From NCBI GenBank assembly GCA_038496445.1, contig JALMLS010000332.1, forward strand, positions 124,001-188,000: a stretch of 64,000 nucleotides of DNA, read 5' to 3'. The notes below the pieces were generated by a model, which saw nothing but the letters and a program-made list of their open reading frames with translations, did not search any database and was not told where the DNA came from. Positions 3,001 to 52,322 of the stretch are shown one piece after another (position 1 is the first letter of the stretch; each line of letters begins with the position of its first letter). This stretch comes from Trichosphaerium sp. ATCC 40318 (taxonomy: Eukaryota > Protista > Tubulinea). A program made the translations under genes and the position numbers.

Positions 3001-6000
3001 CAGATTTTGAGAACGTACCTCTGCAAAGCTTTTACACGCGCTCAAATGCGCAGACATTGAAAGATACTGTATGAACTGAAATTAGAGCACGACAGATCGT
3101 GCATTAAACGCTCTGCGAGCAAGAGTGTACAGGCAAGCCGTTGTTATAAATACTACTCACCGCAGCAGAATACCACACTTTGTTTTATGTTTGTGTACCG
3201 TATTTGACCAGACTTTTTCATTGTCTTCAAAACGCTTTAAGCATGGCATGTGTAACACATACACGATGCAAAGAAACGTCTACAAGGAAGCACGACACAA
3301 ACGTGCATTGACACTGTCAATACTCCTTCTTTCGTCAAGAAACAGCTCTAAGAGCGTTACTATGTTAATGTTTCTTTGCCGAGCGTTGAAAACACTGCAA
3401 ATTTTTCGAAAACTGTACAAAAGGACTAATTCCACTATCTTTATTATTTTTTGTTTTAGTACAACGGGTTTGGGGAGCAACAATGTCAAACTTGAAGTTT
3501 TTTTCGCCTCGAGAATTTGCAAGTTTCGTGTGTAGTATTACATGGCGTTTTCTCGGTCTATAGGTCCGTCAGATACAGCCTTTGGTAACCTCTTCTTACG
3601 ACGAGAACGTGAGTGATGGTTTGAACGTTTTTCTGACTTAACAAGCATCCCTTTTGTTCAAAATTAGTCAAAGAAAGAAAAGGAAGTCAAAAAAAGTCAA
3701 ATCCACTCTACCTGTTTTTTTATGTTGTCTCTGCTTTTTACTAACAGTTAAATCATCCGCAATAGCTCCATTACCTTGCTTTTCTGCAGCAATCTTATTT
3801 CTATACCAAACACGTGTTAAATAGTACTGCTAGGTGATAAAAATCTCAAAAAAATAGTTTTACCTTTTGGTTGCAAGAAGCGCATAAAAAGGGTTCCTGT
3901 GAACACTCCTATTAAGAGATGCCAACCAAGAATCCAATTCGTATTTTGATGGCGCTTGTATTATATACTCTGTATGATGACCTTGTACAAGTGTACCTCC
4001 TAGAAGAGAAATGGTGAGCAGATCATGTCACAAAAAAAATTGTGAAAAAATCGAACCTGAAAATTTAGATGCTTTGATTTCAGTGTCATGAGGGTTAGAG
4101 AGAATAAAAACGTTTTTACGCTTGCTCTCTGTGTATTTCTTAACCTCTAAACTCTCAAGTGGTATTATACCACAAGGGTCAGGGTCTGTAGGATCCTTAA
4201 AATACAAGAGATTGAACCCAGATAGCACAAACCTAAAAAACAGTAAATTGACCGCTCTTTAACTACCTTCAAGTACCAGCGCTTCTTCCAAGTTTTAATA
4301 CGTCCTCCCTGTTTAGTAAGCCATCCCTACATATAAGTCAATATCATTAAAAACAGTCAACGGTCCATCCAGGACTAATGTAACAAAAAATAAAAGTCCA
4401 AAGTGCACTTACCTTTTTATCAGCGTTACTGACAATTTCGCTTTGATAATTAAGTTTAATCTCGTCCATAATGATACTATCGTAAATAGCTTCCAAAAAT
4501 TCTTGGTTAAAGTCACCTCCGGAGTTCACACCTACAAGAACACGTGAGTCATAAGTTAAATATTTTCTTCTCTTCGGTCGTCACTAAAAACTGAACCTGC
4601 TTACCTCTGTTGGTGTTAATAAATTGTTCCTTGGTCATTTTATCACGAGGTCGAATAGCGTCATTGTGAGCATCAGTGTTGAGCATAATTGTAGAAAAAG
4701 CTAAAGTGTAAACAGCGTCTTCATGTCTGAATAACTCCAACGCTAAGTTCTGGTTGTAGTATACTGTAGCAAATGTTTCCATAATTCTATCAATCTTCTG
4801 GGCTTCTCCAGGTAGTCTGAAAGTAAGCAAATAACGTCTCAAAGCAGTAACGAATTCAGTCTCTAAGACAAAAGCTGTTATTTCTTTGAAAACAAGAAAG
4901 TTTCAAGAAAATATTGATCGAAACTCCATGTGCTTACCTTTGAAGTCAAAATGTTTTACATAAGCTTGTAGTATTGATAGATTCTCTGCTTCTCCGAAAT
5001 AGTCTCCCAAAACAGCAGGTTTACATGACTTGCTATTTTGGAACAAAAACAAACCAAGAGAATCAGGATTTTTAACATCAACGAGTTCGGCGAGATGTAA
5101 CATTGCAAGGCCCTTTAGAATAGTTAGACTGGTGTAAGGGTATACCTTTATGTGTATGTATGTAAATTACCTGTTTTGGATCCTTATTAAATTCAGCAAG
5201 ACCTTTAGTAAGAGCCATCATATCCTCTTCAGTTTTAGATTTACCTTTCGCTTTTCTATCAAAATTGAGAGATCTTGCTCTTCTCTGTACTTTAGGTGGT
5301 ATAACAGAGTCCTTCTTATCATCAGGATGCTTTTCGGGAGAAGTTAATCTTACATCCGTTATAGCAGTCAAACGTCTGTTGTTTGTATTTGTAGGCAAGC
5401 AAGGAATCTGGAGCTAAAAATAATAAAAAAATTAGAACGAAGAAGAAGTAAGTTTCCTGAGATTTCTCGCTCCGACGTACAGATTCAGAGTCTAGCGAAC
5501 TCATACTAGCATCCATAACAGCACGGACACGTGTTCCTTTTGAATTAGTAGGTAATGAACGACCGTTACGTCTCTTTGAAGAACGTGAGTTCTGTTTCTT
5601 TCGTTTTCTTGAAGAGGAACGCAAATACGAGTCATGTGCGGACATGATAGACCTAACAATAAATTAGCAAGGTAACACAACACTCATCGCTTGTAATTAG
5701 TACGTACTTGAAAGCTGAGCGATCTAATTTAGAGAGTTGTGTAGCAATATTCTTTTTTTGAATATCTGCTCCAAATCTCGCCAATAGCTTGGCAACTCGA
5801 GGATGGCCTCGCTGCAAGGAGTAGTATAAAGGTGATTTACCATGCTTTGATCTAAGTGATTGTCAGATATCTATTGTGCTGTTTGGTACTTGCGACGTAC
5901 AGTGCATTCACATTGGCCTTGCGAGCAAGAAGTAGTTTGCAAGAACTTAAAGCGCCAACAGCAGCTGCCACATGAAGTGGTGTGAGTTCTCTGTCATCAA

Positions 6001-7895
6001 CTTCAGTCACTTTACTTCCTTGTTCTAAGAGGGACTTTATACAGCCAACATGGTCGTTGTAGCAAGCGTTGAATAATGGTGTGCCGCCTAAAGAGCAACA
6101 TGTAAACAAAGAGCTTTGAAGAAAAAAAACTATCAAAAAACCAAAAACAATGATGTCAATGATGCTAAACTGAAACGTGCCTTGAAGATCTCTAGTGAGC
6201 AGGCTTGCGCCAGCTTCAATAAGCACGTGTATACAGTCCACATGACCATTGAATGCAGCCTAGATAAGATGAGTTACTATGATAACTAAGTCAATACCTA
6301 ATGTCTAAAGGTGCCTTGTGTAAAGGTGATGCACCGCCTTCCTCATCACAAAGGTTGACGTCTGCGCCTGCTTTTATGAGTAACTCTGCTACCTTCTTTG
6401 ATCCTGTGAAAACAGCCTGAACATAAACTTATCAGTAAAAAGATAACAAATAATCACGTGGTGAACGTACTTTATGTATAGGTGTAGCACCTTCTTTATC
6501 TGTTGCGTTAACGTTTGCTTGTTTTTTCAACAAGAATCTTACACATCGATACTGGTCATTATAAGCTGCCAAATGAAGTGGCGTAGCATCCGTATGGTCT
6601 TTACAATGAATATCAACCTATCAGAATACATAAGTACTTCTGTTGTTCCGCGGAAAGGGGAAGAGTAATTTACAATACCAAAGCATAAAAAAGTGAGTAC
6701 GTGCCTTTTTGTGTACTAATACTCGTGCGCACTCAGTATGCCCATTATAAGCAGCTTTGTGTAAAGGCTTTTCTCCTGCGGTATCAGATGCCATCAACTT
6801 TGCTCCTCTTGAGAAAGTCATCACATTTTAGAAAAACGAACAGGAAAAACTAAAAAACCGATTTGTAATCAAGAAAAATACCGTACCTATTCGCTAGCAA
6901 AGAAACAATATCAGGATGACCATTAAAGCAAGCTTGATGAAGTGGTGTCATATTATCTTCATCTTTTACATTTATATCGGCTTTATTAGCCAAAAGAACC
7001 TCACAGCATCTCACGTGACCTAAAGTTTCAAAATTACTAAATCGCAGCGATAATTAACTAAAAATCAAAAAATCTTGAAGAAATTACGTACCACCATAAC
7101 TTGCGTAGTGTAACGCTGTGTTCCCTTCAAAGTCTCCAATATTAACCTTTGCATGGTACCGTATAAGAATCTCTATACTTTCAACATCTCCTTTGAAAGC
7201 TGAATGATGAAGAGCGGTCTGAAAACAATATACAAATTAGTGTGATGGTAAAAAATACAAATAACATAATTTGTCACGTGATCAAACAAAATAACGCAAA
7301 AACAGGCAATAAACAACTTATACTGCGAAAAGAGCTTGAAAAGAGCGTTAAAAAAAATTATTGATGAAACAAAAAAAATTCTCGACTGACAATCGTTTCT
7401 CACCTGTCCTTCTTTATCTGCTGCCTGTGTATTTGCATCGTATATGAGGAGTTTCTCCACTACACTAGAAAAGCAGTTCTCCGCCGCATAGTGTAGAGGC
7501 GTACAAGAATCAGTATCCGGCACATTTGGATTTGCGTTTGCTCGTAACAGCTGAGAAACAATCTCAAGGTTACCTCGGAGGGAGGCTTTGTGTAATGCAG
7601 TACTTTCTTCACAGTCTCGCATGTCGACTTTGGCACCATGTTTTAATAGTAAACGGACTATGCGCACGTGATTTTGGTAGCTAGCGTTCTGTAAAGGTGT
7701 CGCGCCCAACTTGTCTGTACAATTAACGTCTGCGCCTTTCGAAAGCAATAATCTGACACAATTATATGCCCCTGAGTATGCTGCACAATGTAGGGCAGTT
7801 CTGGAGCTATCATCACTGTCATTAGGATCAATGGTGCGCAATAATTCTTCCAAGTGCTCTGCGTTCTTGGATAACGCAGCTTCTTGTAAGGACAT
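1..7895 (-). CDS. Large multi-exon signalling protein: ankyrin repeats - Sec7 (Arf-GEF) - PH - RasGAP - beta-propeller; 3' end runs off the window
   Basis: Ankyrin repeats (TALHCAA, TPLHYAA, TPLHVAA) at 5700-7895. Sec7 motif FRLPGEAQKIDRIME plus IMLNTDAHN at 4600-4840. Cytohesin-type PH ending LDSWLASLNRSVHRNPFY at 3863-4330. RasGAP arginine finger TLFRNNSFATR (about 2520-2550) and FFFLRYLCPGMVAP (about 2065-2105). VW(C/V)G propeller-type repeats below 1480. Exons between PH and RasGAP join in consistent phase. Confidence 0.85.
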
Positions 7896-25055: not shown

Positions 25056-27064
25056 TTATTTTAAGAACATGCTATACACTTCGTTGTCGTTCTCACACGT
25101 ACTCGGGAAACCCTTTTCTTTCATGTTATGTAAGAACTCTTTGAATTGAGTAACATCATCTTTTGGTACTTGTATACCAGCTAGAACACGACCAACATCA
25201 ACGCCATGATTTCTGTAATGAAACAAGGAAACATTCCAACTAGAACTCAATGATGTTAAGAAAAGCTTAAGTGCTCCAGGTCTATCTGGAAAACTGAAGC
25301 TGTACAGGTGCTCGTCAGTTACCTATGGTACAATTAAGATAATCAGAAAAGTAGAGGTAAAGGTCGTACTGTTGCAGAACGGCCTCCAACAAGATATCTG
25401 GCATGACTTTTTGCCATTTCATTTTGAGTGACGTTAACTACTTTGAAATTCTCAGCTTTGATTTTCTCTATTACTTCCTCAGACTCTTTATCGTAATCGG
25501 TACACTGGAACGCTAAGAATATACTTGCTTCTTTTGTATCTCCATATCGATAGCTGAACTCGGTGACATTTTTTGGATAAAGACAATTGTACAATCTTAA
25601 AAAGCTTCCAACTTCTTCGGATATTTTTACCGCTAATAGACACTCACGACGTTCTCCAATTTCAGCACGTTCAGCTACAAATCTTAGCCTATCAAAATCC
25701 ATGTTTGCTCCTGAAGAGATTGCTACAAATCGAGAACCAACGATTTGATTGTCTATGAAAGAAACCATCAGAAAAAAAAATAAAGAAAATCTTTGCACGT
25801 TACCTTGTATGAATTTCTTCACACCTGCCACGGCTAAAGCCCCGGCAGGTTCTAATATACTTCTAGTATCTTGAAATACATCTTTGATGGCAGCACATAG
25901 CTCGTCATTCGAAACAACTTGAGTATTCAAGTAAGCAAGGTATAAAACCAGAGCTAGAGATATTACCTATGATATCTTCAACGTATTTTTGTACGAGTTG
26001 GAACGTCTGTTGTCCTGCCAAACGCACAGCGGCACCATCAGCGAAAGTAGAAACTTGTGAAAGTGCTTCTCTTTTACCAGCTTGTACTGCATGGCGCATA
26101 CTGTCTGCTCCTTTCGCTTCGACACCGTAAACTGAAAAAAGAAAGAGTTATAAAAAAACTCTTGGTTCTTGTTTGTTGGTACCCTTCACCGATGGTGATA
26201 TACGCTTTATGTAAGCTGATACTCCAGCTATCAATCCACCGCCACCTATGCAACAAAAGACGTAATCAGGCGGATTTGATCCAAGTTGTCTCAAAATTTC
26301 CATTCCAATTGTTGCTTGTCCCAAAATAACATATGGATCATCGTATGGATGCACAAGAACTCTGTTTTCTTCCTTCATTATACGCATAGACTCATCTTTT
26401 GATTCATCAAAATCGTTGCCTTTCTATTAAAGCCATAAATATTAGTACAATAACATCACGTGATTCTTTTTCAGTTAACTTACAAGCACAACTGTTCCGC
26501 CGAGAGCCAGAACTGCTGACGTCTTTATTGATGGCGTAAAAACAGGCATAACAATTTTTGCATCGACACCTAACTCTGCGGCAGCAAGAGCTACGCCTAT
26601 AATTCGACTATAAGCAAAAAACATTGAACACTTTTGCCAAAAAAAAAGAAATACAAAAAATGTTAAGTACCTTGAGCGTGATTACCAGCTGAACATGCTA
26701 CTACACCTCTTTTTTTTTCTTCTTCTGTAAGTGTTGACATTTTATAGTAAGCTCCTCTCAGCTTAAATGAGAATACAGGTTGCAAGTCTTCACGCTTTAG
26801 AAAAATGTCATTTTTTGTTCTTTTTGACAGAATCTTTGCAAAGCTAAGAGGCGTTTCTTTAGCGACTTTATAGGCGTAAGAGGGTATTAATACTGTTTTT
26901 TAATAAATACTAACCTTTGTACACTGGAGCGCTAAGCACGTGGCGTAAAAATGTAAGATCATCGGAGAGTAATGGATGGAGATCGTTTTCTGATTCAGTA
27001 GCTGCTGATTTTGTTGCCTAAAGTTTGTAAATACGTTTAAACGTACAAATAATGACCGTGCCAT
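25056..27064 (-). CDS. ilvA: Biosynthetic threonine dehydratase (deaminase) with two C-terminal regulatory domains
   Basis: [17 protein letters not shown] (PLP lysine), [69 protein letters not shown] and SLFHYRNHG. Confidence 0.95.
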
Positions 27065-31882: not shown

Positions 31883-34800
31883 ATGTCTTCTTCATTTTAT
31901 AGCAGTGTTATTGTTACTCTAGCTCTTTTTGTATCGACTTCGCTTTCTGCGTCAAGCGCTAGCCCCATTACTATATTCTCTTGCGATGCAACCTCTACGG
32001 AGTGGGGTTGCCCACCTGGTGATTGGCTAAACAGGACTTTTTCCGTTGATGGTGTGGTAATGACAGTACCGAACCGCTTTAAGTGTACTACAAAACCTGA
32101 ACCTCGTATGAGTTGGGCAACAAAAGCTACCCGAACTGATACGTATATGGTCTTTGTTGGCGAGCAAGATAATCCACAGACAGAGTACATCCCTGGGAGT
32201 ATTATAGAAGTGACTGTGTTAACCACAAAGTATAGATCAAAGTACAGAGGATTGATGATGTACGTCCACGTGCATTGTCTTTTTTCCGCTTTTCAATCAT
32301 TTACAACTAATAATGTTCAGGTATGCCGAAAATCAGGACAACAATCACGTGGGTGAATGGAAGCTACCAAATGATTTTCCACGTGAGTAAAACGTTATTC
32401 GATTGCTTGCTTTAAGTAGCCGGTTTCATTCGTTGGTCACTCTCAAGTGAACTTACGTTATGTTTAGCTATATTCAAATTACCATGGAGCTCCAATCACA
32501 GTACCTGTGGTAACACATTGATGCATGCAAGTGCTCAACTTAAACCGCTGAGGTCTACCATTTCGTTTATCGCTCCTCCAAAGGGTACAGGGAAAATTAC
32601 ATTCAGGGCACTCATAAAGAGCGGCGATGCTAACACTGGCGATTTTTGGTGGCCGAATAGTGGCGGTGACTTTACAATGACGGAATCAAGCCAGTCTCTT
32701 CCAACAAACACAGGATGGTTCCAAACGGAGGTAAAGTCATTACCATCTCTACGAACTACTTATTTTGTTGTAACAAGGTTGGACAATCTTGTACTGAGCG
32801 ATGTGCGACGGAGAATCTTCAATGTGACTTGGTATCACTGGAGCGCATCAATAGTATAGATAGGATTAACTCTGAACTAAAAACTTCCGGATTTCTTTGT
32901 AAGAAGCCATTCCTAAGCGGATGCAGCGCTCTTGGTACAACACAGAGTACAGCTGGATTTTGTTACTATGACGATACAAGATGTGAAAATCAAGGTCGTA
33001 CTATAGATAGAGTAACTTGTGACTCAAAGACAACAAGCAATGAGAACGGGTACAATTCACCTCGCTTTTGTGTTTCTTCTGACCTTTGTTTACAGAATGC
33101 GTTTCTGTAGATGCCTAGCGGTCACCCAAGCACCAGTTATACCAGATAATACCACCGTGCCTTCAAGTGACAACACTGAAAAACCAAGCTACGCTCCAAG
33201 CGAGCTATCTCCATCATCAAGACCGACTATGTCTATTTTGTTACTTGCCTTATGCGCGTTTGGTGTTGCTTTCTTTACGTCAACAAATTATCGCGCTTCA
33301 TCACCACTTATCCTCGGTCTTTTGCTCATTGCACTCATCGCGTTGCCGCCAACTCAGGGACACAACTGGGTCCAAAGTGTTAGTCGTTCACCTCATGCAA
33401 GCACTGAAACACCATGCCCGCCTGTTGTTCAACAAGGTCCTCATGTTCAAGTTGGCCCTAATCAATATTTCGAAGTAGAGTATGTCCAAGGTCATGAGGG
33501 TATGTCGTACTTTGCTTTTGTTCATTCAAAATACGAAGACAAGCTGAAATTACACTCTGAAGAGATGTTTCAAAAATACTTTGATGAAGCACCTGTTATC
33601 AAAACACTTAGAGTTGTGCACAGACGTTACAAGAAACGTGATCCAATACCTGAAGACTCTTACTTCGGACCTGAGATTTTGATGAACGACCCTGGCTTTA
33701 TTCCTCGTCCAGAAGCTTTTGGAGAATGGCTAGATGACGCAAAGTTGTTTTCGTACAAACCACAGTATCATCAAGAAAATTACGCGGAATACGAACACCC
33801 AGATATGCCTTGGATTGAAGCTGTTTTCAGAGGCGAGCACTTGGTTAAGAGAGGGCTAGATTCTGATGTTGTCAAATTGAAGATACCTGGTCGTTCTGGA
33901 AAAGGAAGGTATATTGTACATTGGTACTGGAAAGGATATCGCGATTGTACAGATGTTGATTATGTTGATCATCAAGTTCAGAATATTTACGGAATTAAAG
34001 AAAACGTAACTTCTTACACGTGCGTTAGTTTTAGAGCATTTGTTTTCCTAGTATTTGCACCAATTGACTCTTATAAATGTATACAGGCGCGTCGATCATT
34101 GCTACTTCCCAGATTACAGAGCCTCCGGAAGTACGTCGAAATACTTTTTTACTGATGGATTGTTTTTAATACTACCTTGTTAGAATGCTCTCGAATCTAC
34201 AATGACTTCTCATATTGTGCTCGGAACTGTGGCCCTAGGTGTACTGGTATAGCAGTTATGCCTCTATCTGTATCATCCAAATACAAAGAAGAAGCATCCC
34301 TTGTAGATGATGATTGTTTTGAACACTTTGAGAACTACACTGCTCTTGAGAACAAAGAGGATATCTATGTTTGCTTCAACGTATTTGCAAGACTACCTTC
34401 AGATACTTTTGGTGAAACAGAAATAGTATATGAAGACGATCCTGCCTACCATGCCACGTGTTTTATGAGAAGCACTGGTCTTACTTTCCCTGGATATGTA
34501 GCACCAACAGAGAAGGAAATACCTTGGAGACACGGAGATAAATGCATTGATTGCAAGACCAGAGAAGTCAATAAGTATTTATCAATCACAAACACACCAA
34601 GGTGGCCTCTTTCAGATGATTGCATCAACTGTGATCTTGAGCCTGTGCCAGTACATAAGCCAAAACTTCCTACTCTAATAAACAAAGAGAGTGGAATGGC
34701 TTGTAATGGAGCAAGATATATGTGGAGCGGGCAGAAGCATCATTCATGTAATGGAACTAATTCTGATGTTTCTAAACTTTGTCATAAACAGCTTACATTT

Positions 34801-35031
34801 GATGGTAGAAAGGAAAAAACTGACCATTTCTTCCCTTCCGAGTGTGCAATGGCCGCAAGCTTAGACCCTGATTGCACGGATAAGATTACAATGTACGATC
34901 GCACTCTTCCTTATGGCGGTGTTCGTGCAGGGCAATGCTATTGTCAGACAAAGGTTGAGTGCTGTAACGGATGTTTGAAAGTTGCGGCAGATAGACCTGA
35001 GTTTGCCTACTACGAGCTTGTTATGGCTTAA
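31883..35031 (+). CDS. Secretory polyprotein-like protein, paralog A: signal peptide - Reeler - Cys-rich - hydrophobic segment - internal signal peptide - His-brace (LPMO-like) domain - Cys-rich tail
   Basis: Seven exons in consistent phase. Reeler-like KYRGLMMYAE..VGEW..C..LMH..K..F.APPKGTGKITFRALI. The internal ..LIALPPTQG|HNWVQSVSRS has His at 33361. Second His in YVQGHEG (33493). YIVHWYWKGYRDCTDVD. Confidence 0.8.
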
Positions 35032-35233
35032 AGTTTATTTCGCCTATCTCATTGCAAATAAAGCATATTCATTTAAAACATGTTGTTTCGTGTCACGATG
35101 TATCTCGACAATCTAATGTTACGTTTACACTTCTTAAGAAGTCTCAGTTTTGTGGTAACGCCAGGTATTGAGCTTGTAATATATAAAAATAAATGATAAG
35201 ACTGTAGAGTAAAGACATAAAGCGTGTTTTGCT

Positions 35234-36358
35234 TTATTCGATGTCACAAAAATACTGTTCTGGAATATTTCGCTTAGCTGCTTCTTCTACGTTTAGGATA
35301 TCTTGTGGAGAAAGGGTAACCTTCTTACCGGTTTGAGGAGTATGACTTGCGCCATGGAAAGAAGAGGCCATTACAGGTGCTAAAGTGTATGGTTTGAGAA
35401 TCCATAGAGGCCTTAAATGCCATGACTTAATGAGATGAGATACTTGTTCATGTCCTCTATCTGAAGCTATTTCAGCTGCTGTTTTTTCAGAACCTATATT
35501 CTTTTCTTGGTGGTCTTGTTTATATCTATACCATCTCTTTGTGTCTTCAACAATATTAAACGCCTTGTATTCAGTATTCGCTCCATAAAAAAGAAGAAGT
35601 TGTACAATCTTTATATTACCCAAAAAAGAAGCAATATGAAGAGGTGTCCAAGTTAAACTATTGGCACCATAACCATCAGCATCGATTGTTGCAATATTAG
35701 GAGAAGCACCTTAAGAAAGATATAGTCAGAATACAAGTTGATCGAAAAAAAAACCATCACGTGATTGTTTACCTTGCGAAAGAAGAAGCTTAACAATATC
35801 GTAATTTTCTAGAAGTACGGCGTAGTGTAGAGGTGAAAGATCATTTGACGCAAGGAAATACAGCTCACTGCTTCCTTCTATGGTTGAACTGCCGTTAAAT
35901 GAGTCCATATTCCTCATATTTATAAGGAAAGGGTTGAAACGTTCTTTGATTAGAACATTCCAAACATCTTTACATTCCGATTTTTTTCTTCTAACAACTT
36001 TTTCTAACTTAGCAAGTTTTTTCAATTGGTTACTGAAGAGTGGCTGCCCTGAAGGCATTGTCTTCCAGGTTGAATATACGCTAACAAGTAGTTCTGATGC
36101 AGGATTATCTATGACTGGAGATGACTTTGACGTGATGTTTAGAACCAACCAAGGAGATGGACGGTATTTTTTGAAGAATGCTGATGAAAGTGTTGTGTAG
36201 GTCCTTGTTGATTTTTTTTGCTTTAAAAGAGACAAAGCATTCCATAACGAGCATGTACGGCGTGCAGAGAGTAAATCAGATAAGTTAAGGTATTTTAGTA
36301 TTTCAGCGGTTATTTCGTTCGCAAGAATGGCGTTTATAGAATATCTGGTATCACTCAT
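35234..36358 (-). CDS. F-box and ankyrin-repeat protein
   Basis: LANEITAEILKYLNLSDLLSARRTCSLWN (F-box). SPLHYAV, WTPLHIAS and TAAEIASDRGH (ankyrin). One intron at about 35711-35773. Confidence 0.85.
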
Positions 36359-37162
36359 AGCGTTTTAGCCCTAAATAATAAAGATTAAGAGACAACTTAT
36401 TAACTGTTCGTTTTCATTTGGTGTTTTACCTTTTAGAATATTTTAGAGCGTGGGTGTTGCTGTTTTATGTACTTTAAGTATGATAGGTGTGCGTTCTACA
36501 ATAGAAAACTGCTGAATTTTAAATCAAGAAGAATTTTTAGTTTTATTCCGAAGTCCAACTTAAGTCAATATAATTTTCTAGTTGACTAAGATTGCGGTCG
36601 TGTTTAGGACTGTAGAACTTGGGCTCATTACCTAATGGGACCGTGTAAAAATGTTTAATTATCTGTATAAAAACAGGTCATTTTTCTTCGAGCTGTAACA
36701 CCTTGTTCATATTATTGTATAGCGCAGAACTATTGCTACTTGTAGCAGGTTTTAAATGTGTTTTGAAAGTTTCTTTTTGTATTTTTGAATGACTAAGCAC
36801 TCTTTTTATGTCATACATAGCATCTGAACCCTATTTACCAATAACGATAAAATATGTTATAGCGTGATGACATGAGGTATGAAAACGCGAGATTACAGAC
36901 TATTTCAAAGACTGGGCTCGTCAGAATTATTGTTTTGTGTGGCAGTTGAACTTCTTTCAAAAATTGTCCCCTCAGCCTTTTTAATTTTTTAAGGTTAGAG
37001 TAAGGTGACCCTCTAAATTACATCATACCGTACATATTCCTATGGTAGGAGTTACACGAATTTAGTGATTGCGAACACATGTGTGCGAAGTGCACCTCAA
37101 GATGACTATTTCTGTCTTTTTTACATTTATTACTAAATAAGCAAGTGATCAAAGATCGCGTT

Positions 37163-39073
37163 ATGATCATCTTAATATTGTTATCTCTATTCTCTGTATT
37201 TGTACTAGCAACGATAGTAAAAAACTGGAGAAACAGGGCAAGAAATTACCCACCTTCACCAATAGCTTTACCACTCATTGGACATCTTCATCTTTGGTCT
37301 GATCCAAAACAGATGGTCGCGTAAGTACTTTTTGTCTTGTTTACGTTTGAAGCGCTCATACCGCCACCAAGCACTGCTATGGAGTTCAAGAAGACGTTAG
37401 GAGGTATTTTCAGCATGAACTTTGGTTCTAAAACAGTACATATGGTTTACAGACGCTTATACGCTACTAACACGTGTTCAGCTTGTTTTTATTGCCGATC
37501 CTGACCTTATTCAGCAAGCGCTAGTGAAACGACGCGTACAGCTTTCTGACCGGTACCATTGTTTTAGTTTCGCTTTCTTACTCGTCTAAGGCCTAGAGAA
37601 GGGCTAGTGGGCATGCAATCAATCATTTTACCGGCTCCAGAAGGATGTACGTCATAAAGCGATTTCATTTTGTTTCGCCTGATAAGTTTCTTAAGGTATC
37701 TCTTTCTCGGATTATTCGCCTTATCACAAAGGATTCAAAGCAATCATGATAAATAATTTGACAGTAGGCAAGGGCTTGGAGGTGCACATTCGCATAAAAC
37801 GTTAGCTAATAAGATTTGTAAAAGCGTGTCAACAGTATTATTTCAAGAGAGCTTCGTGCTGTTTTGAAGTCAATCAAAGAGTGCGCAGCGACGAAATCTG
37901 TTACTCGTGGCCAAGATGTTTCTACAGGACTTACATTCAACATGATCACAGGCGTAATGTTTAATGTCCGTGGATACGAACATCCTGACAAAGATTATTC
38001 TGATTTGCTTCCGATTATTGCACGTATCACTAATGCTATTGTTGTGCCGTATCTCCAAGACTTGATGCCTTTTTTGGCCCCATTTGACGAAAAAAGAGTA
38101 AGCATAGTCTATTTAGTATGTACTCATAAGCCTAATAATTCTACAGCTTGCCAGTTTGAGGGCTACATTAAAACAGCGAGATGAGAATTTAATGAGAATC
38201 ATAAAAAGAATGAGAGAATCGTTTGATGAAACAAAGCCACGTCATTATATGGATGAGGTTATGATCGCAAAGCCCGATATCACAGATGGAGAATTAATTT
38301 TACATATAATGGAAATAGTTGGTGCAGGCTTTGATACCAGCGCCAACACGATTCAATCGTGAGCATCACTTATCATTAGAGTGACTAACTTAACTTAGAG
38401 CTTTGACTTGGTTTGCCAAAAATCCTGACGTGCAGGAAAAACTTAGAACTGCTCTCGGTGGTATAGACACGCTGAACATGCCAATCAAGGCGCGTCTTGT
38501 TTCTACTGTATAGGCTAATACTATTTCACAGGACTTGCAAAATATTCCTTACCTCAAGAATGTAGTTCAGGAAGTATTTCGCATTATTCCAATTGTTCCT
38601 CTTTTAATTGCTCATACTACTAACGAAGATGTTGAAGTGGGTGGATATACTGTACCTAAAGATGTACGTTCTGATTACACTCAAATTTATTTACATGACT
38701 ATAGGCTCTTGTGTTCTTTATGCATCATAATGAATGCCAAAATGACAAGTGGGAGAACCCAAAAGAATTCAATCCTGACAGATGGGACAAGCCTATGCCA
38801 AACAAAATTAACCCTTTTTCGTACGCTACTTGCCTTCTACTCCTTGAGAGCTTATATCCTTCTAGCCAAGGTTGGAGGCGTTGCCCTGGAGAGCGTATAG
38901 CTACTTCTCTTGTCTATAGAGCCATTGCGTCTTATGTTCAGCATTTTGAATGGACTGAAACAAGCACTCCTAACTCTGTTGAAGTTGAGTTTGTTAGTAT
39001 TCACAAGTTTGTCACAGAACCGAAGTTTTACGCACGTGATTTATTGTTTAGCCCAACAACTTCAGATGTTTGA
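37163..39073 (+). CDS. Cytochrome P450 (microsomal)
   Basis: N-terminal TM plus PPSPIALPLIGHL, I-helix AGFDTSA, ExxR (EVFR), PDRW, and heme motif PFSQGWRRCPG after removing the small intron at 38821-38865. Confidence 0.95.
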
Positions 39074-41246
39074 TCTGAAAATCACAATAAATAAGTTTGG
39101 TTTTTGCCGTTGTTTATCATGTTCTCAACTACCTGCCGAGACCTATTACACTCACTAGAGCCAGATTACGTAAGCATTCCACACATGCTTATCGGCTTTA
39201 AAAGATGCTGTTAAACAAGGTAGTGGAGTGCGAGAGCATAAAATTACGTTGTAAGCACGGAAAAAAGTACTTACAAAAAAGCAAAAACTTTTTGCCTTAA
39301 AAGGAAAGTAGCAACATAAACTCCTTGAACACGGTTTCATGATGCCTGCACATTACACAGACTTTTAATTGTTCCAAATATGTAGGAACTGAAGTTATAA
39401 GTGTTTTACAGCGTTTAGTGGCTAAAAAAGTTAATTGCTCTTTAAAATCAAAGAACAATACTATACAAGCGTTATTCGTGATTAGAATATGCGTTTCCAA
39501 GCATAAAACGCTGTTTAAAACAAAAAGGCAAGAAAAAGGTATAATGCCAGGCAATGCCATCGATATTCTCTAAACTATATAAACAGATCATATACTTCTG
39601 TTTCTACATAGTCACGGTTTGGACCGTTTTGGCCCTAGCCTTTAATATTGGTTTTACGAAAAATTCCAGCTGTAGAAAACTGGGCCATTTTTAACAACAC
39701 ATAAATGTGCAGCTAAAATACATCACTTGCAACGCATGTGAGTATACCGGTGGCAATAACTGAGATGTAAAATTGATTGTGATAACTTTGGGAAAAAAAA
39801 AAAGTAAGTGAGTACTTTTGGTGCAAACGCTATTGGCATGTGTATTTTTACAATTGATCATAGTGGCACCACTATGCCATATACTCATTTTCTAATGAAG
39901 AAAAGTGTAGAACATAACATATAACATCAGTGTAGAATAGTAAACCTTTTGTTTCATCAAATATCATTCAACAAACTCCCACATTTGACGCACTTTATAG
40001 TGTGTTTACTTTTCAATAACATGCTTTGAGGCTATTAAATACTACCATTGACACCTACTTAAAGTGATAAAAACATAATTGATAATGTGTGCAATAAGTA
40101 TAACTTAGCTAAACAATGCTTAAAAAGTCACAAAATTAAACTATTTTTTAGAGTCATTGTAGGCTACATCACTGTTTGTGAATGTTTCATACTCTCTATA
40201 TATTATTCACAGTATGTATGGCTACTATTTACTCAAGCGTCAATCATAAAAAACTATTTTCAACATCAAAATAATTTTGTTTTAAAAGTGGAGTGCTTAC
40301 ATAATCTGGCTCTACCATATTAAAGTATTACGCAAGTAAGCGCAAAGTGTCACATCTTTCTACAATCCGACCAGAAAGTACTTTGAAGGAAAATTTGGAG
40401 AGAAACGGAAAATTAAGGGATATTTGTTTATCTTCTATTCTGTGATGTTCGAAACCTCTGTCAGAAATGTCAAAAACCTTACAAAAGGCTATAATTCAGT
40501 ATCCGTCTATGTGACAAGTAAATCTCTTTACAGGCTGTTTCCTTTTTTGTCTTTCTATCTAACTGCTTCAAAATGTTAAGTTTGAGTTCTCCTTTCGTCA
40601 CCTTTTGTAATGCTTTATGGTTTAGATTGCATTTGTGGACAGTCATTTTAGGCCGAAAGTTATATATAGTTATTCACTATTAGTCCACTGTTGTTTTGGT
40701 GATTTCTTTACTTTCCTTTTTCGAAAAGTTTTACACGGAGAATTAGAAGTACCGGGCCCGTTCTGTTTTTTTACCCTTCCACTAACTTAAAATACTAGTT
40801 GGACGGAGTAAGCGGAATATTAAAACGTCATGTCAATGTTGTTTGTTTCCTTTATTTCTTTCAAACCTAGATACACGGCATTTAGCAGATCATATAAATA
40901 GGTTACGAATGCGAGTTTAAAAGGCAAAAATATGTTCACATGACATGTCGTTTGAAACTCTTTCTTAGCAAAGTACAAAGCACTACATGCATCCATTGAT
41001 CACACTTCTGCTAAAAATACATTGACTTAGTAACTATTGTGTATGTGTCTATTGTCTGAAGTACTAAAAAGTGTACTCGTACTTTGGAATAACATACATG
41101 AAATGAGCGTATATTATTGTTGACATAGTATGGGAAGGTTAATGCCACGCGCCTTTTTTACGTTATAGTGGACCACTATTGGTTTTCGATGATATCGCGT
41201 TATTAGTCATTATCATTAAACATACAAGTACACAGCAACTGCACTT

Positions 41247-44234
41247 ATGAGGCTTCTCAAGGTGTTATTCATTGTAGTGTTCTTTGCCTACACCCAAGCT
41301 GTATCAAACGCGAACCCGAATGTTATATTTCATTGTGACGCCCTCTCTGATAAATGGGGCTGTCCACCTTCTCAGTGGGAACCAGGAAGATGGGGTCCTA
41401 ATAGATTAAACTGTTTAACTCCTGGACGTTTGATGTCATGGGCTTCTGAAACTGTAAGAACGAACGATTACAAATTATCGGCAAAAATTGGTTTCAATGA
41501 TATCACTTTCTACGTTCCAGGCCACATTTTAAACATTGTGTTGGAAGTTAAAGAATATTCTATGAAATATAGGGGACTGCTGCTATACGCTGAAACAGAC
41601 GCAGGAACACGTGTTGGCGAGTGGAAGCTTTTCGACGACAGCCCTGGTAATGATCTTTTTCTTTTTCTTTTCTTCATCTTCGAACTTACGTTTGTTTTAG
41701 CTGTATGGCAGCTACCTTGGCCTTCAGAACATCACTGCGGCAATTCTGTTATGCACAAGACAGCTGCTATAAAGCCATTGAAGACGACCTTCAAGTTTGT
41801 ATCTCCTCCTGCCGGCACCGGAACAATTCACTTTAGAGCTCTTATCAAGCAAGGAGATGCTAATCTTGGTGGGTTCTATACCCCAAATCTTTCCGGAGAC
41901 ATAACGCTTACCGAATCAGACTACTACCTTGAACCACAGCTTTTCTTTAGAACGCAGTTGGGGCAATCTTGTTACTCCAGATGTAAAGAGGAAGGCAAAA
42001 TTGTTGATCAGAAGTTTCTTGATGATATCAGAACACAACATGATTTTGAGTCGTACCTTGGTCACAGACACGTCTGTAAACTACCGTTCTTGAGCGGTTG
42101 TAATAGTCTTGGTATTACATCCAGTAAGGACGGCCTTTGCTACTATGATGATGAAACTTGTGAAGCACAAGGAAGAAGTAAAGCTCGTGTAACTCAATGG
42201 TCCGCTTCAATGAACGAACAAAATGGGCACGTGATAACTTACTTAGTTTTCCGTTTTAACATTTGCTTCCAGTTATCGCTATTGCCCTTGTATATTTAGT
42301 ATAGCTGAGACATATGGAAAGAGGAGTGTATTAGAAGCAACGATTCAAAAGAACAGTGCCTCAACATCTAGGTACTATCCAACCATGAAACAGTTTTCGT
42401 ACTATTTTCTTACTGTATTTGTTTAGGATACCCGTTTTATTCTTAATTTCTTTGTTGCTTTTGTCATTCAATCATGGGTCAAAGAGATTGTCTTCATTAT
42501 CTCTATTTTTGGCAGTATTGGCCGTGTCGCTGTGTGTCTTGCCGACTGGAACACGCGCTCATAATTGGATTAAAACACCAAGTAGAGCTGTGCATGCGAG
42601 CACAGAGCAACCTTGCCCATCAAGGCTACAAAACGCTCCTCACGTGCAAGTACAAACAAATCAATTTTTCGAAATTGAATGGACACAAGGACATCACAAC
42701 TCGTTCACATACTTTGCTGTTGTAGCGGATGAAGACAAAGAGAACCTCGTCAAGCACTCTGCAGCTCTATTTGAACAGGTAATAACTTGTTTTGTCTACT
42801 AGTATGTATCTAACACGTTTTTCGTTTAGTATATTAGCGAAGCCCCTGCCGAGTCTACTTACGAAACAAAGAGTTTGCATAGACGCTATACAACCAGGCC
42901 TGAAGACAAGAGCTACTTGTATAAACGCGAAATCCTCCCAAACGATAGAGATTTTTGGCCACGACATGAAGCTTTTGGCGATTGGACAGATAGGTCTGCT
43001 TTATTCGAATACAAAGATATATTCGTAGAAGACAATATACACGTTGCCTACGACAACCCAGAAATACCTTGGATAAAGGCAATATACAGATACAAACACG
43101 TGGATTCTCGACCTTTCGATTCAGATGTTGCAAGATTTACTATTCCTACAACTGGTCAATACGTCGTTCATTACGTATGGAATGGTTACAGCGATTGCAT
43201 AGATATTGATGTATTAGATACGCATGTTGAGAATATTTATGGAGTTGAGGCGACTTCTACAGAATACACGTAAGTCAGAATTCTTATATTTTTGTTTGTT
43301 TTTTTTTTGTGTATCAAGCGTTCTGGCTTACGTTTTTTTTTGTAGGCGTATAGATCATTGTCATGCTCCTGACTATCTCTCCACGTTATTAGACTGCGCT
43401 AGGGTTGTACGAGGGCTTGATTATTGTAAGTCACTATGTAGTAGAGGCGAGCAATGTTCGGCTATTATCGTTGCTCCTCTTGTAGAAGAAGGCTCTTTTA
43501 ACGTTGGTATTCTTCCTGACGATTGCTACAACAATATAAACGACACAACTTTACTTGTTGATAGAAGGGACGTATGCATGTGCTTTCTTGTTAAGCCTCG
43601 AGTTCCAGGAGAAACATTCGGTCCTTGGGAGATGACAGATGATCCTCTCGACCCTGTTTACCAATCAACTTGCTTCCTTCGAAACAGAGGAAGACAGTTC
43701 CCAGGGTTCGTTTCTCCTACGAGAGATGAGTCTATAAGCTGGAAGCACGGAGAAAAATGCATATCTTGCAAGGCACAAGAAGCAAACAAAGACTTATCTA
43801 TCGTACCAAGATGGAAGTTTGAAGAGACTTGCATAAACTGCGACTTGGAGCCTCCACCAACCCTCGATACACTTGCTGTTGCCCCTAAAACACATGACAG
43901 CCATGCTTGCGATGGTTTCGACAATGGATGGCTGAACAGAACCTATACCACGTGCGACAACGTTGAGGAGAGAAACAGTTGTGTGATACGGTTATACCAA
44001 GAAAGGAACACTGGTATCGTTTCAAGGCAGAACATTTTCCCAGAAGAGTGCATCCAATTTGCTGCAGAAAATCCTGATTGCTCCGAACACTTGTTCATGT
44101 TCCACATTCCTCACCTTCCTGGATTGGTAAAGTGTTCTTGTATCAGCCAAAATCCGTGCTGCAATGGGTGTAATGTAATACCTCGAGACAACTTTTCTAT
44201 TCATAGACTTACACGTGGTACAAGCGTGTACTAG
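41247..44234 (+). CDS. Secretory polyprotein-like protein, paralog B (same architecture as 31883-35031)
   Basis: Six exons. Reeler-like KYRGLLLYAE..VGEW..VMH..SPPAGTGTIHFRALI. NSASTSRIPVLFLISLLLLSF, then ..LAVSLCVLPTGTRA|HNWIKTPSRA with His at 42560. WTQGHH (42692). YVVHYVWNGYSDCIDID. Cys-rich tail collinear with paralog A. Confidence 0.8.
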
Positions 44235-49050: not shown

Positions 49051-52000
49051 ATGAATTTTGGTGCCGTATCACTAGATAACGCTTTCGAACACTATCGCAA
49101 ACACCACGGAGAAGCGTTTAGTAGAATTATGGCAAAACAAGATAAAACGTTCATAAAACAGGTTGAAAGTATTGTTAATGCCATAAATACGAGCTTTGTA
49201 AAGCAACTCGATGAAATACTGTTAAAACAACCGGATACGATTGTTAATACAAACAAGCGCTCATCAGAATCAAACGATTATGAGTCACTTGAGTGGTGGT
49301 ATAGGTTTCTCATTTGTTACAGAAATGTCCAAGGCTTTTAAGGCAGCATTGTGGGAACGTGGTATACTTGATGTAGCCCAGTACTCAGACCTATGGGCGT
49401 CTGAGGTCACACCCTTATCACTGAGGTGCCAGTTAGCATGGAGCAGTTATGGCGCTCCTGCATTAGGTTCTGAACCCAAACGTGTTTGTAGTTTTATCAG
49501 TCTCGGCATGAAAAGGGGTGATGTGTTGCCCAAGCCGTCTTTTGTTATTGAGTCATCCTGTTATGATACTAGTGCTACACTCAAGTGGTTAATGAAAGTT
49601 CAGTGTTTTAACTACCCAAGGGATGTCATGTGGCGGTATATGCTTAGAGTACTACCTGTCACCCATAAGAAGAATGCATATCCACCCGAGAAACATGAGG
49701 ACATCATGTGGAAATGGTTCTTGGCTAGGAGCATATTTGATACCATCATGGACTTGGTACGATTTGGCAACATCACTCAATGGGTGCCTTCAGTGTTGGA
49801 CGAATGCAACAACCCAATCACCACTGTTTGTGTGGCAGTTACCATGGCTTGCATATGGAATATCAGGAATTTTGTTAAACACAGCCAGAAGCTTCCTTCA
49901 TCTACAGAGCTACGTTTCCTCGTTAAAAAGTGGATTCTTTTAGCTATAAATTATAACCCCAAATTGATAGATGTTCACCCCAACTGGGCAGTATGGAACA
50001 GTGAGCTTGGATTTTGGAACTTCAACAAAGACTATGAAACACCAGCATATATTGACTATAGAGATTTGATACACCCACAACACACCTTGTTTGTTGCCCA
50101 GCGCAATGAGCCGGCCTTTGCTATGGGACACGAAGTGGCTCGCATCACACGTAATGGAGATGTCATCCATAAACAGCGATGCTCCACCAAAAATATTAAA
50201 CGTATCAGCAAACGACCCAAACACCTAAATGACTACCTTTTGTAATATCGTGTAAATAAGTGACCCTACTCTCTAGCGTTCCTAGAGAGGAGGTTTTTCT
50301 AGTAAATAGCTTACCTCCAAAAAAAAAAAAAAACGATTATGAGTCACATAAACGCAAACGAAAAGCGAGGTATGTTCAATGAAAGTTCGAAAAAATAGCA
50401 GACTGACCAGCAGGGCGGTTTGCTTTCTGCAAACAGCTGGACGCCCTCAAGAAGCCAGTGTTTGCTCACCAACTGTCAGCTATTGGTGGGCGAAAATGAA
50501 GTTTTTCCAAACTTTATTTCTTTGAACTTTTGAATTTTACTGGAATCATGATTCCCTTTTTCAATCTTTTTTTTACAGCAATACATTGTCTTATAGTCAA
50601 AGTCCTTTTAATAGTTCTTGTATTTCACATGTATTATTAACGTTTAAAAGGACACTGATGGCACTACAAAAAGAAGAAGAAGAGAAGAAGAATATCATTT
50701 GGTACCCTCCTGAAATCATTTCAAACATTCTTGATCACGTGGACGCCAAAGATTTATTTCCTGTTGCTCAATCATGTCGCCACATGGCTGATATTATTCA
50801 TGATATTGTTGGATACAAATATGTTTATCTCAAACGATACACCGATATTCTAAAGATACAACAGTACAAGGGTATCATGAACAATAGTATAGTTCAACTA
50901 GACCACATGAGGGATATTACACTATTTTCATTACTTGCTGGATGTCGTAAACTCAAAAGATCGCCAAAGAATAAGCTTGTGAATGATGGTGATCTGAAAG
51001 CAATAGTAAATGTTAGACAGCCTACCTTTGTTGATCTTAGTGAATGCAACAATGTGACAGATGAAGGTATTAGAGCACTTAAAGGCGCTCGTACTGTTAA
51101 CCTGTATGGCTGCAATGAGGTGACAGATGAAGGCATAAAAGCGCTTTCTGGAGTACATGAAATTGACCTTTCCGGATGTCATAAAGTGACAGATGAAGGT
51201 ATTAAATCGCTTGCTGGAGTTCATACCTTAACAATCAATTATTGTGGAGCGACAGATGAAGCCATTAAAGTACTTGCTGGAGTGCATACTATTAATTTAA
51301 GAGGATGTTATAAGGTCACAGATGAAGGCATAAAAGCGCTTGCTGGAGTACATGAAATTGACCTTTCCGGATGTCCTAAAGTGACAGATGAAGGTATTAG
51401 AGCACTTGCTGGAGTTCATACTATATACATTAGAAATTCGCCTAATATTACAGATGAAGGCGTCAAATCATTGGCTGGCGTTTATGCCATAATGTTGAAT
51501 GGTTGCACATCAATAACAGACGATGGTATAAAAGCATTAGCGGGAGTACACAATATTCGGTTGTTTGGCATGCCTGCAGTCACAGATGAAAGTATTAAAG
51601 CACTTGCTGGAGCTCATACAGTTGCCCTTGATGGCTTTGAAAGTATTACAGATGAAGGTTTTAAAGCGCTTAAAGGAGTACATACAATTAGCATTCGACA
51701 AACTAATATCACAGATGAAGGCATTAAAGCGCTTGCTGGAGTTCATGAAATTGACCTTTTTGGATGTACTAAAGTGACAGATGAAGGTATTAAAGCACTC
51801 GCTGGAGTCCACAAAATTAACCTTTTTGCATGTGGAGATGTTACTGATGAAGGTATAAAAGCACTTGCTGGAGTACATACTATTAATTTAAGTGAATCCT
51901 ATTATGTTACAGATGAAGGCATTAAAGGACTTGTTGGAGTACATACTATTAATTTACGTGAATGTTTTAAGGTTACTGATGAAGGTATAAAAGCGCTTGC

Positions 52001-52322
52001 TGGAGCTCATACAGTCAATCTCAGCAAATGCAATAATGTGTCAGAGAAAGGTATTAAAGCACTTGCAGGGGTACATGAAATTGACCTTACCGACTTCCAT
52101 ATTACCCAGGCAGGCTGCAAAGCGCTCAAAGGTGTACATACAATTACTATTGACTATTGGTGTGTTAATGATAAAGTTGTAGACATGCTTGTACAAGGAG
52201 GTCTTCAGTACATTCAGATCAATAATAATGTGGATAATGGTGGAGAAACAGTGTCAGGTGACATTAAACTGCAATTAAGAGAAGCAGGAGTGGAGATGGT
52301 AGAGGTGTATACTGGCTGCTAA
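49051..52322 (+). CDS. F-box / leucine-rich-repeat protein gene; exon 1 interrupted by a retroelement
   Basis: Long exon 50651-52322: YPPEIISNILDHVDAKDLFPVAQSCR (F-box) followed by about 17 LRRs of about 22 aa (VTDEGIKALAGVHxIxL). After removing the insertion, the ORF from 49051 continues HKRKRKAR to a GTATGT donor at 50370 that splices in phase to the AG at 50649-50650. An internal ATG at 50658 remains. Confidence 0.8.
49289..50330 (+). mobile_element. 5'-truncated non-LTR retrotransposon copy (L1/Tx1-like ORF2 C-terminus) with poly(A) tail
   Basis: 17-bp TSD AAACGATTATGAGTCAC at 49272-49288 and 50331-50347. Poly(A) at 50319-50330. Intronless ORF with RDVMWRYMLRVLP and CIWNIRN, resembling zf-RVT-region motifs. 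3' UTR hairpin at 50269-50289. Confidence 0.85.
51040..52170 (+). repeat. Tandem coding repeat, unit about 66 bp (LRR)
   Basis: Recurrent acagatgaaggtat(t/a)aaagc(a/g)cttgctggagt(a/t)cat at nucleotide level. Confidence 0.9.

Follow-up and report, generated by a model that had tools for sequence, protein, structure and literature searches.

A stretch of 64,000 nucleotides from Trichosphaerium sp. ATCC 40318 (contig JALMLS010000332.1, positions 124,001 to 188,000; hereafter the window) carries two paralogous genes in tandem, A and B, each encoding a precursor in which a Reeler-like domain is followed, in the middle of the chain, by a domain that begins with the residues H-N-W directly behind what looks like a second, internal signal peptide. 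The window has the GC content of AT-rich eukaryotic DNA (35–42%) and short introns, and the splice models of A and B were built by hand from its sequence. Gene A has six introns, each GT-AG and 46–85 nt long. The two proteins are about 40% identical over their full length, three intron positions are common to both genes, and A and B are sisters in the tree of H-N-W domains (Shimodaira–Hasegawa-like approximate likelihood-ratio support 99). In both paralogs the order is signal peptide, Reeler-like domain, Cys module, linker, two hydrophobic segments, cleavage site, H-N-W domain and Cys-rich tail. A tblastn search of the 64-kb window found no copies beyond these two.

An uninterrupted spliced open reading frame (ORF) runs through each precursor, as an earlier, sequence-only reading of the locus had supposed. 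Removal of a 46-nt intron (33050–33095 in A, 42227–42272 in B) rebuilds the conserved motif G-x-R-[FY]-C-x-C in both genes (G-Y-R-Y-C-P-C in B), which supports both the splice model and the continuity of the frame. The length of this intron is not a multiple of three, and its retention would lead to a stop after about 20–24 codons (33110 in A, 42299 in B), giving a soluble Reeler-only product without the hydrophobic hairpin and the H-N-W domain.

The hairpin consists, in both paralogs, of two hydrophobic stretches with a short basic loop between them. The second stretch ends in a signal-peptidase-like site immediately before a His: ALPPTQG/HNWVQSVSRS in A (codon 33361, residue 414) and LPTGTRA/HNWIKTPSRA in B (codon 42560, residue 387), the slash marking the predicted cut. 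Features of a type I signal-peptidase substrate are present in A as NYR, a 14-residue h-region and PPTQG, and in B as NHGSKR, a 15-residue h-region and PTGTRA. A second His stands at domain position 45 in both paralogs, within QGH, and both share the terminal pair Y(I/V)VH(W/Y)xWxGYxDCxD(V/I)D, which coincides with strands 182–190 and 193–201 of the structural model described below. The sequence-only reading had singled out these same features as marks of a copper-binding domain akin to lytic polysaccharide monooxygenases (LPMOs), made from the middle of a precursor; all of them stand in the spliced proteins. The features are collected in Table 1.

Table 1. Features of genes A and B, followed by neighbouring genes; positions are those of the window
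Feature	Position	Strand	Basis and remarks
Gene A, whole coding region	31883..35031	+	One ORF, 929 aa, manual splice model; aligns end to end with B
Gene A exons	31883-32259, 32321-32382, 32468-32730, 32778-33049, 33096-34019, 34087-34130, 34184-35031	+	7 exons
A N-terminal signal peptide, approximate end	31883..31960	+	Hydrophobic N-terminus in translation; cleavage position inferred
A Reeler-like domain	31961..32730	+	Two introns inside; homology to N-terminal domains of alignment A2; own pieces without Pfam match
A Cys-rich module ending R-F-C-R-C	32778..33117	+	Conserved Cys columns, alignment A3; spans intron 33050-33095
A Ser/Thr/Pro-rich linker	33118..33222	+	Read from translation; the part in which A and B differ most
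A first hydrophobic segment, residues 368-388	33223..33285	+	Read as stop-transfer or like a glycosylphosphatidylinositol (GPI) signal
A short basic loop N-Y-R	33286..33294	+	n-region of the putative internal signal
A internal signal peptide, residues 392-413	33295..33360	+	h-region and c-region PPTQG; predicted cut between 33360 and 33361
A H-N-W domain, 219 aa	33361..34019	+	Modelled as LPMO-like beta-sandwich; His1, His45, Tyr193, Cys19-Cys196 pair
A C-terminal Cys-rich region, about 300 aa	34087..35031	+	One intron; no Pfam match, no hydrophobic tail
Gene B, whole coding region	41247..44234	+	One ORF, 901 aa
Gene B exons	41247-41646, 41701-42226, 42273-42371, 42427-42778, 42830-43269, 43346-44234	+	6 exons
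B Reeler-like core, exon 1	41310..41645	+	PF02014 17.4 bits, E 0.0065, below the 21-bit cut-off
B 46-nt intron, GC-AG	42227..42272	+	Position and phase match A intron 33050-33095
B first hydrophobic segment, residues 343-356	42428..42469	+	Translation
B basic loop N-H-G-S-K-R	42470..42487	+	Translation
B internal signal peptide, residues 363-386	42488..42559	+	Predicted cut after T-R-A, between 42559 and 42560
B H-N-W domain	42560..43269	+	Intron 42779-42829 inside; alignment with A, domain tree
B C-terminal Cys-rich region	43346..44234	+	No Pfam match
F-box/ankyrin gene	35234-36358	-	Between the two paralogs
Cytochrome P450 gene	37864-39073	+	Between the two paralogs
F-box/leucine-rich-repeat gene	50586-52322	+	Window neighbour
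Ankyrin-repeat gene	7173-7895	-	Window neighbour
Threonine-dehydratase C-terminal domain	25343-25930	-	Window neighbour

Predicted internal signal peptides in front of the H-N-W domain

We used the 219-residue domain of A as query in an exhaustive HMMER search of 1.84 billion cluster representatives and found 336 relatives at E<=0.001, 158 of them at E<=1e-10, the best at 43% identity; the closest relatives that carry names are amoebozoans. For the statistics of the site we used the 129 relatives whose match starts at query residue 1, among the 150 listed of the 336, and added A and B. In each of these 131 sequences the H-N-W domain stands directly behind a signal-peptide-like segment with a site obeying the (-3,-1) rule, and this happens in two contexts. 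Forty sequences carry it near the N-terminus, no more than 60 residues in, after a signal peptide of the usual kind; in the remaining 91, which are A, B and 89 relatives, it lies internally, between positions of about 90 and 920.

The residue at -1 of the internal sites is Ala in 75 cases, Gly in nine and Ser in seven, and that at -3 is A, V, T, C, S or G in all 91. Pro, Ser, Thr and Gly are enriched at -5/-4, the h-region is strongly hydrophobic in 87 of the 91, and the loop between the two segments carries on average 1.95 Lys plus Arg as against 0.35 Asp plus Glu. This pattern is far beyond chance. Read as targeting signals, the internal sites show n-, h- and c-regions as in a textbook substrate of type I signal peptidase, and these look no different from those of the 40 N-terminal cases.

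The relation between the two contexts can be followed in an alignment of 63 family sequences, which was used for conservation, for the tree and for AlphaFold2 modelling. N-terminal and internal forms are interleaved in the maximum-likelihood tree of these domains, with seven changes of context, at least five of them forced by well-supported branches, which implies that N-terminal and internal signals have repeatedly been swapped before the same His and that the two contexts are interchangeable. The idea that N-terminal forms are gene-calling artefacts was rejected for several clusters, which have transcript-sized contigs with a Met start; examples are transcripts of Phyllostaurus siculus and 2.1-kb Logan contigs encoding 690–703 aa.

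Fold and affinities of the H-N-W domain

Six positions are invariant across the 63 sequences (H1, N2, H45, Y73, Y193 and G211) and nine more are nearly so (W3, R9, P18, H28, Q30, D139, W190, D195 and D198). The second conserved His to which the sequence-only reading had drawn attention is among the former, H45 being found in 63 of 63. Neither Cys19 nor Cys196 occurs without the other: 54 sequences have the pair and nine lack it. Such covariation implies that a disulfide ties the N-terminal segment to the last strand, at a distance of three residues from Tyr193. The invariant Y193 starts that strand and adjoins the Cys pair. The strand that holds it, Y-x-D-C-x-D-V, presumably resembles the C-terminal motif of AA10 LPMOs.

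AlphaFold2, when given the 63-sequence alignment, models the domain as a beta-sandwich with two short helices (predicted local distance difference test, pLDDT, 93.5; predicted template modelling score 0.90); on the single sequence pLDDT is 33. In a structural comparison of this model, LPMOs and LPMO-like copper proteins from seven families head the list, with X325 as the top neighbour and AA13, several AA10, AA9, AA11, AA16 and fusolin among the others, and residue 1 of the model is aligned to the mature His1 of each LPMO-like neighbour chain. Language-model features in the ESM Atlas point in the same direction: they place the domain closest to eukaryotic clusters with LPMO_10, which is present in 44 of the 60 nearest named clusters, with top scores of 0.91 and 0.90.

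The family profile had no matches among PDB sequences at E<=10, an NCBIfam scan of the domain returned only noise, Pfam found nothing meaningful in nine exon-level pieces of A and B, and a word-indexed protein search gave four matches each for the alignments of the domain and of the N-terminal half, with no link to annotated LPMOs. Going by its modelled fold, we conclude that the H-N-W domain represents a new LPMO-like family, outside AA9, AA10 and AA15 by sequence.

Proposed processing of the precursor, and its two halves

Taken together, we consider it likely that each gene yields one precursor that is cut twice by signal peptidase of the endoplasmic reticulum (ER), releasing an LPMO-like copper domain with His as its first residue. 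The N-terminal signal peptide would begin translocation of the Reeler domain and Cys module, the first hydrophobic segment would stop it, and the short basic loop would remain in the cytosol. The second hydrophobic segment would then resume translocation as an internal signal peptide. Cleavage behind the small residues at -3 and -1 would give the downstream chain His as residue 1, and with it a copper brace of His1, His45 and axial Tyr193 on an LPMO-like beta-sandwich; the Cys-rich tail behind it is probably a binding region. The copper-domain chain would be secreted in soluble form and the Reeler half kept on the membrane, in a fixed 1:1 ratio. If the chain is cut, we would also expect, with nearly the same assurance, that the brace binds copper. 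True polysaccharide oxidation is a possibility to which, even given cleavage, we would lend less than even weight, the alternative being that, like X325/Bim1, the domain handles copper or transfers electrons. 'Copper enzyme' is less certain than 'copper protein', since X325, the closest neighbour, binds copper without known LPMO activity.

Several results count against this interpretation. A position weight matrix for cleavage, made from 29 N-terminal signal peptides of the family and crude in that it covers only positions -13 to -1, ranks the true junction 7th in A and 28th in B, where the strongest competing sites fall within that hairpin too; across 87 internal sequences it places the junction first in 25 and among the top three in 46. 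Of the checks that the sequence-only reading had proposed, the model gave a beta-sandwich, as that reading required, but Foldseek against the PDB gave no match at E<=0.001, with fusolin and one AA10 at E~0.05. PF03067 (LPMO_10) matches none of the 63 members at E<=1, and the sole LPMO match in Pfam is that of AA9 (PF03443) to one of the 63 at E 0.0057, the window domain having none. X325, which heads the structural list, is not known to act as an LPMO. The brace of H1, H45 and axial Y193 is predicted from their invariance. Lastly, the proposal of one mRNA per gene in this genome, for which no RNA run is listed, is inferred from gene structure and from transcripts of relatives.

The precursor might instead stay uncut, the hairpin serving as a permanent membrane anchor that shows both halves on the cell surface and the His having a role that needs no free amino terminus. 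Such a topology is self-consistent, with both ectodomains outside and the basic loop inside; cleavage is so far only predicted, for every member, and in neither A nor B does the cleavage matrix pick the junction out from its competitors. We nevertheless regard it as improbable, as it leaves the small residues at -3/-1 (91 of 91), the helix breakers at -5/-4 and the invariant +1 His unexplained. Both hydrophobic runs, the second counted with its c-region, have a median of about 16 uncharged residues, which is short for stable membrane helices, and in 40 clusters the same domain comes straight after a normal N-terminal signal peptide, a position in which one expects it to be cut free before the His.

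No more probable, in our estimate, is that the chain is cut but that the H-N-W domain belongs to the common run of immunoglobulin-like beta-sandwiches, serving for example in adhesion or binding, with its His conserved for some other role. The structural list headed by seven LPMO and LPMO-like families, each aligned from its own His1, argues against this, as do the independent pointer of the language model to LPMO_10 and the fact that the invariant H1, H45 and Y193 make up a brace and axial-ligand set.

Slightly less credible still is that the two halves are made separately, either from an internal promoter or alternative transcript near the hairpin, as for Igsf1 isoform 4, or with the fused ORFs being read-through of adjacent genes. 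Gene A does have an in-frame ATG (M370, 33229–33231) at the start of the first hydrophobic segment, other organisms have stand-alone genes of signal peptide plus H-N-W domain, and one stand-alone Reeler-plus-Cys-module gene (described below) has no H-N-W domain within 5 kb downstream. However, B lacks an in-frame ATG from residue ~303 up to His387, as the sequence-only reading had observed for the part ahead of the hydrophobic segments, and the Met of A is lacking in B and in most relatives. In 89 diverged relatives no stop interrupts the frame through linker and hairpin, and the shared 46-nt intron, whose splicing restores a conserved motif, must be removed for the frame to continue. Full-length fused ORFs also occur on single Trinity and MMETSP transcripts. 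They include a 1019-aa ORF on one assembled transcript of Flabellula baltica (P0006), one of Cavostelium apophysatum flagged 'ORF type: complete' (P0028), two MMETSP transcripts and many mRNA-sized metatranscriptome contigs, such as a JGI contig of 2994 nt with a 976-aa fused ORF at 46 to 2976. The fused architecture, which the sequence-only reading had proposed to seek in protist transcriptomes, is thus found there, with 89 internal relatives, several of them on single transcripts. Translation from the ATG at 33229 of A would produce a signal of 44 residues with a pair of hydrophobic cores, an odd arrangement. We also rejected a mis-assembly, or a stop overlooked between the two halves, the frame being open in both paralogs and passing in B through two cleanly splicing introns.

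The half that would stay behind on the membrane is common to most internal forms: direct phmmer searches with A or B find its N-terminal domain in 72 of the 89 internal relatives. PF02014 matches 30 of the 45 sequences in the alignment of this domain (A2; 44 relatives plus exon 1 of B) at E<=0.01, the best at 1e-11, and separate scans of relatives score 24–40 bits, so that the label 'Reeler' given by the sequence-only reading holds by homology. The Cys module of relatives bears a weak, sub-threshold likeness to the last ~85 residues of PF15024 (the GnT-V model). Alignments A2 and A3 also show nearly invariant polar residues in the Reeler-like domain, an M-x-W motif and a later series Cys...His...Lys, which might form a metal or ligand site. 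A stand-alone Reeler-plus-Cys-module gene lies on a genomic contig of another, GC-rich organism (L002:2068-3490); a second frame beside it (ORF 2802-3488) ends in an Ala/Ser-rich stretch and a hydrophobic, GPI-signal-like tail, and the change of frame between the two could be an assembly indel or an intron.

Some relatives carry further modules in this half. In P0178 (a Logan contig) residues ~351–415, between Cys module and hairpin, form a plastocyanin-like cupredoxin (PF02298, 24 bits, above the cut-off); another relative, in the alignment A4 set, matches PF00127 at E 1e-7; P0060 and P0071 have DOMON-like stretches below the Pfam cut-off, and P0143 has thrombospondin repeats. Cupredoxin and DOMON being electron-transfer folds, these modules hint that the membrane-bound half could be a redox partner of the copper domain.

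The first hydrophobic segment may have a separate origin. Among 75 internal relatives it has a median of 16 uncharged residues and a run of small residues ahead of it; the residue directly before it is Lys or Arg in 64% and Asp or Glu in 3%, and 65 of the 75 have an omega-like small triplet 3–11 residues upstream, a count made without a null model or predictor. Such a segment resembles a GPI-attachment signal, which has small residues at omega and omega+2, a spacer of 5–10 residues and then 12–20 hydrophobic residues. On this view two once separate genes may have left their targeting signals fused in the hairpin, the upstream gene its GPI signal and the downstream gene its signal peptide. A GPI signal placed internally, even with another protein behind it, is still processed (PMC2288913). 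We can go further and picture the precursor as two head-to-tail secretory pro-proteins, from which signal peptidase frees the copper domain while GPI transamidase exchanges the hairpin for a lipid anchor, giving products in a 1:1 ratio and making the Reeler half a cell-surface partner for redox or copper delivery. This fuller scheme is speculative and, as a whole, unlikely; the cupredoxin and DOMON-like modules at the same position in some relatives hint at the partner role in it.

Behind the H-N-W domain, the C-terminal region is common to 72 of the 129 relatives. It ends in YYELVMA in A and TRGTSVY in B, with no hydrophobic tail and hence no GPI signal of the X325 type. Language-model features from the Atlas give a weak pointer to PAN/apple domains (scores 0.86–0.88 for PAN-annotated clusters, with few shared features), so that a PAN/apple-like binding function would be a lead only. 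The neighbours of A and B in the window are ordinary eukaryotic genes, and the window has no Rfam family at the gathering score.

Comparison with known systems

According to a 2023 review, N-terminal signal peptides are carried by every LPMO sequence known and by the other His-brace classes that it shows, and a His brace cannot bind Cu before the signal peptide is removed (PMC10952591). In the family described here the copper chemistry of a free N-terminal His is apparently unlocked by an internal signal peptide. A full-text literature search found no paper that joins 'histidine brace' with 'Reeler', or LPMO with 'internal signal peptide', and the sole paper with both 'histidine brace' and 'polyprotein' was unrelated. 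The view of the sequence-only reading that the architecture is undescribed is therefore upheld by that search for LPMOs and His-brace proteins, but not for cellular proteins at large, where IGSF1 is a precedent for an internal signal peptide.

The H-N-W domain of the window is without a Pfam, NCBIfam or PDB sequence model, and its family is widespread in protist transcriptomes. If our interpretation is true, this would be a new LPMO-like family from little-studied eukaryotes, members of which are overlooked by searches for a His right after an N-terminal signal peptide. It would also suggest an obligatory 1:1 partnership between a Reeler surface protein and a copper protein, and so offer a handle on the function of Reeler domains.

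Among the LPMOs proper, AA10 and AA15 have Gly at position 2, and the H-N-W domain has the invariant N2; it further differs from AA15 and AA10 (TdAA15A, 5msz; ScLPMO10C, 4oy7) in having its second His at position 45 and an internal signal peptide. X325/Bim1 (LaX325, PDB 6ibh) shares 12% identity with the H-N-W domain and gives no hidden Markov model match. X325 follows immediately on an N-terminal signal peptide and carries a GPI anchor of its own, whereas the H-N-W domain is internal, lacks a C-terminal hydrophobic tail and has a Cys-rich extension of ~300 residues.

Reeler domains accompany redox modules in the Reeler-DOMON-cytochrome b561 proteins (FRRS1/SDR2), and the cytochrome domain of cellobiose dehydrogenase (CDH) reduces LPMOs. 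The N-terminal halves of those relatives with a cupredoxin or DOMON-like module are similar to these and would fit a role as electron donor, whereas A and B have only Reeler domain and Cys module; no haem or b561 domain was seen.

In their layout the precursors recall viral glycoprotein polyproteins, in which alternating stop-transfer and internal signals, cut by host signal peptidase, give several proteins per ORF in fixed stoichiometry (PMC7926653). The polyproteins of flaviviruses, pestiviruses and bunyaviruses (GPC) are viral, whereas A and B belong to a cellular, intron-containing and tandemly duplicated family. The nearest cellular precedent is mammalian IGSF1, a type-I precursor that signal peptidase divides within the ER into an N-terminal and a C-terminal protein; the cut falls at an internal signal peptide behind a hydrophobic linker, and the authors of that work knew of no other cellular protein processed likewise (PMC9162367). 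The likeness lies in a cellular precursor with a hydrophobic linker followed by an internal signal peptide, of which A and B show the sequence prerequisites. The halves of IGSF1, however, are duplicated immunoglobulin-domain proteins and its new N-terminus has no catalytic role, whereas in the family of A and B a metal-binding N-terminus would arise from the cut, and many protist lineages share the layout. If they are cut as we propose, these proteins would form a large natural set of cellular proteins processed at internal signal peptides, beyond IGSF1 (PMC9162367).

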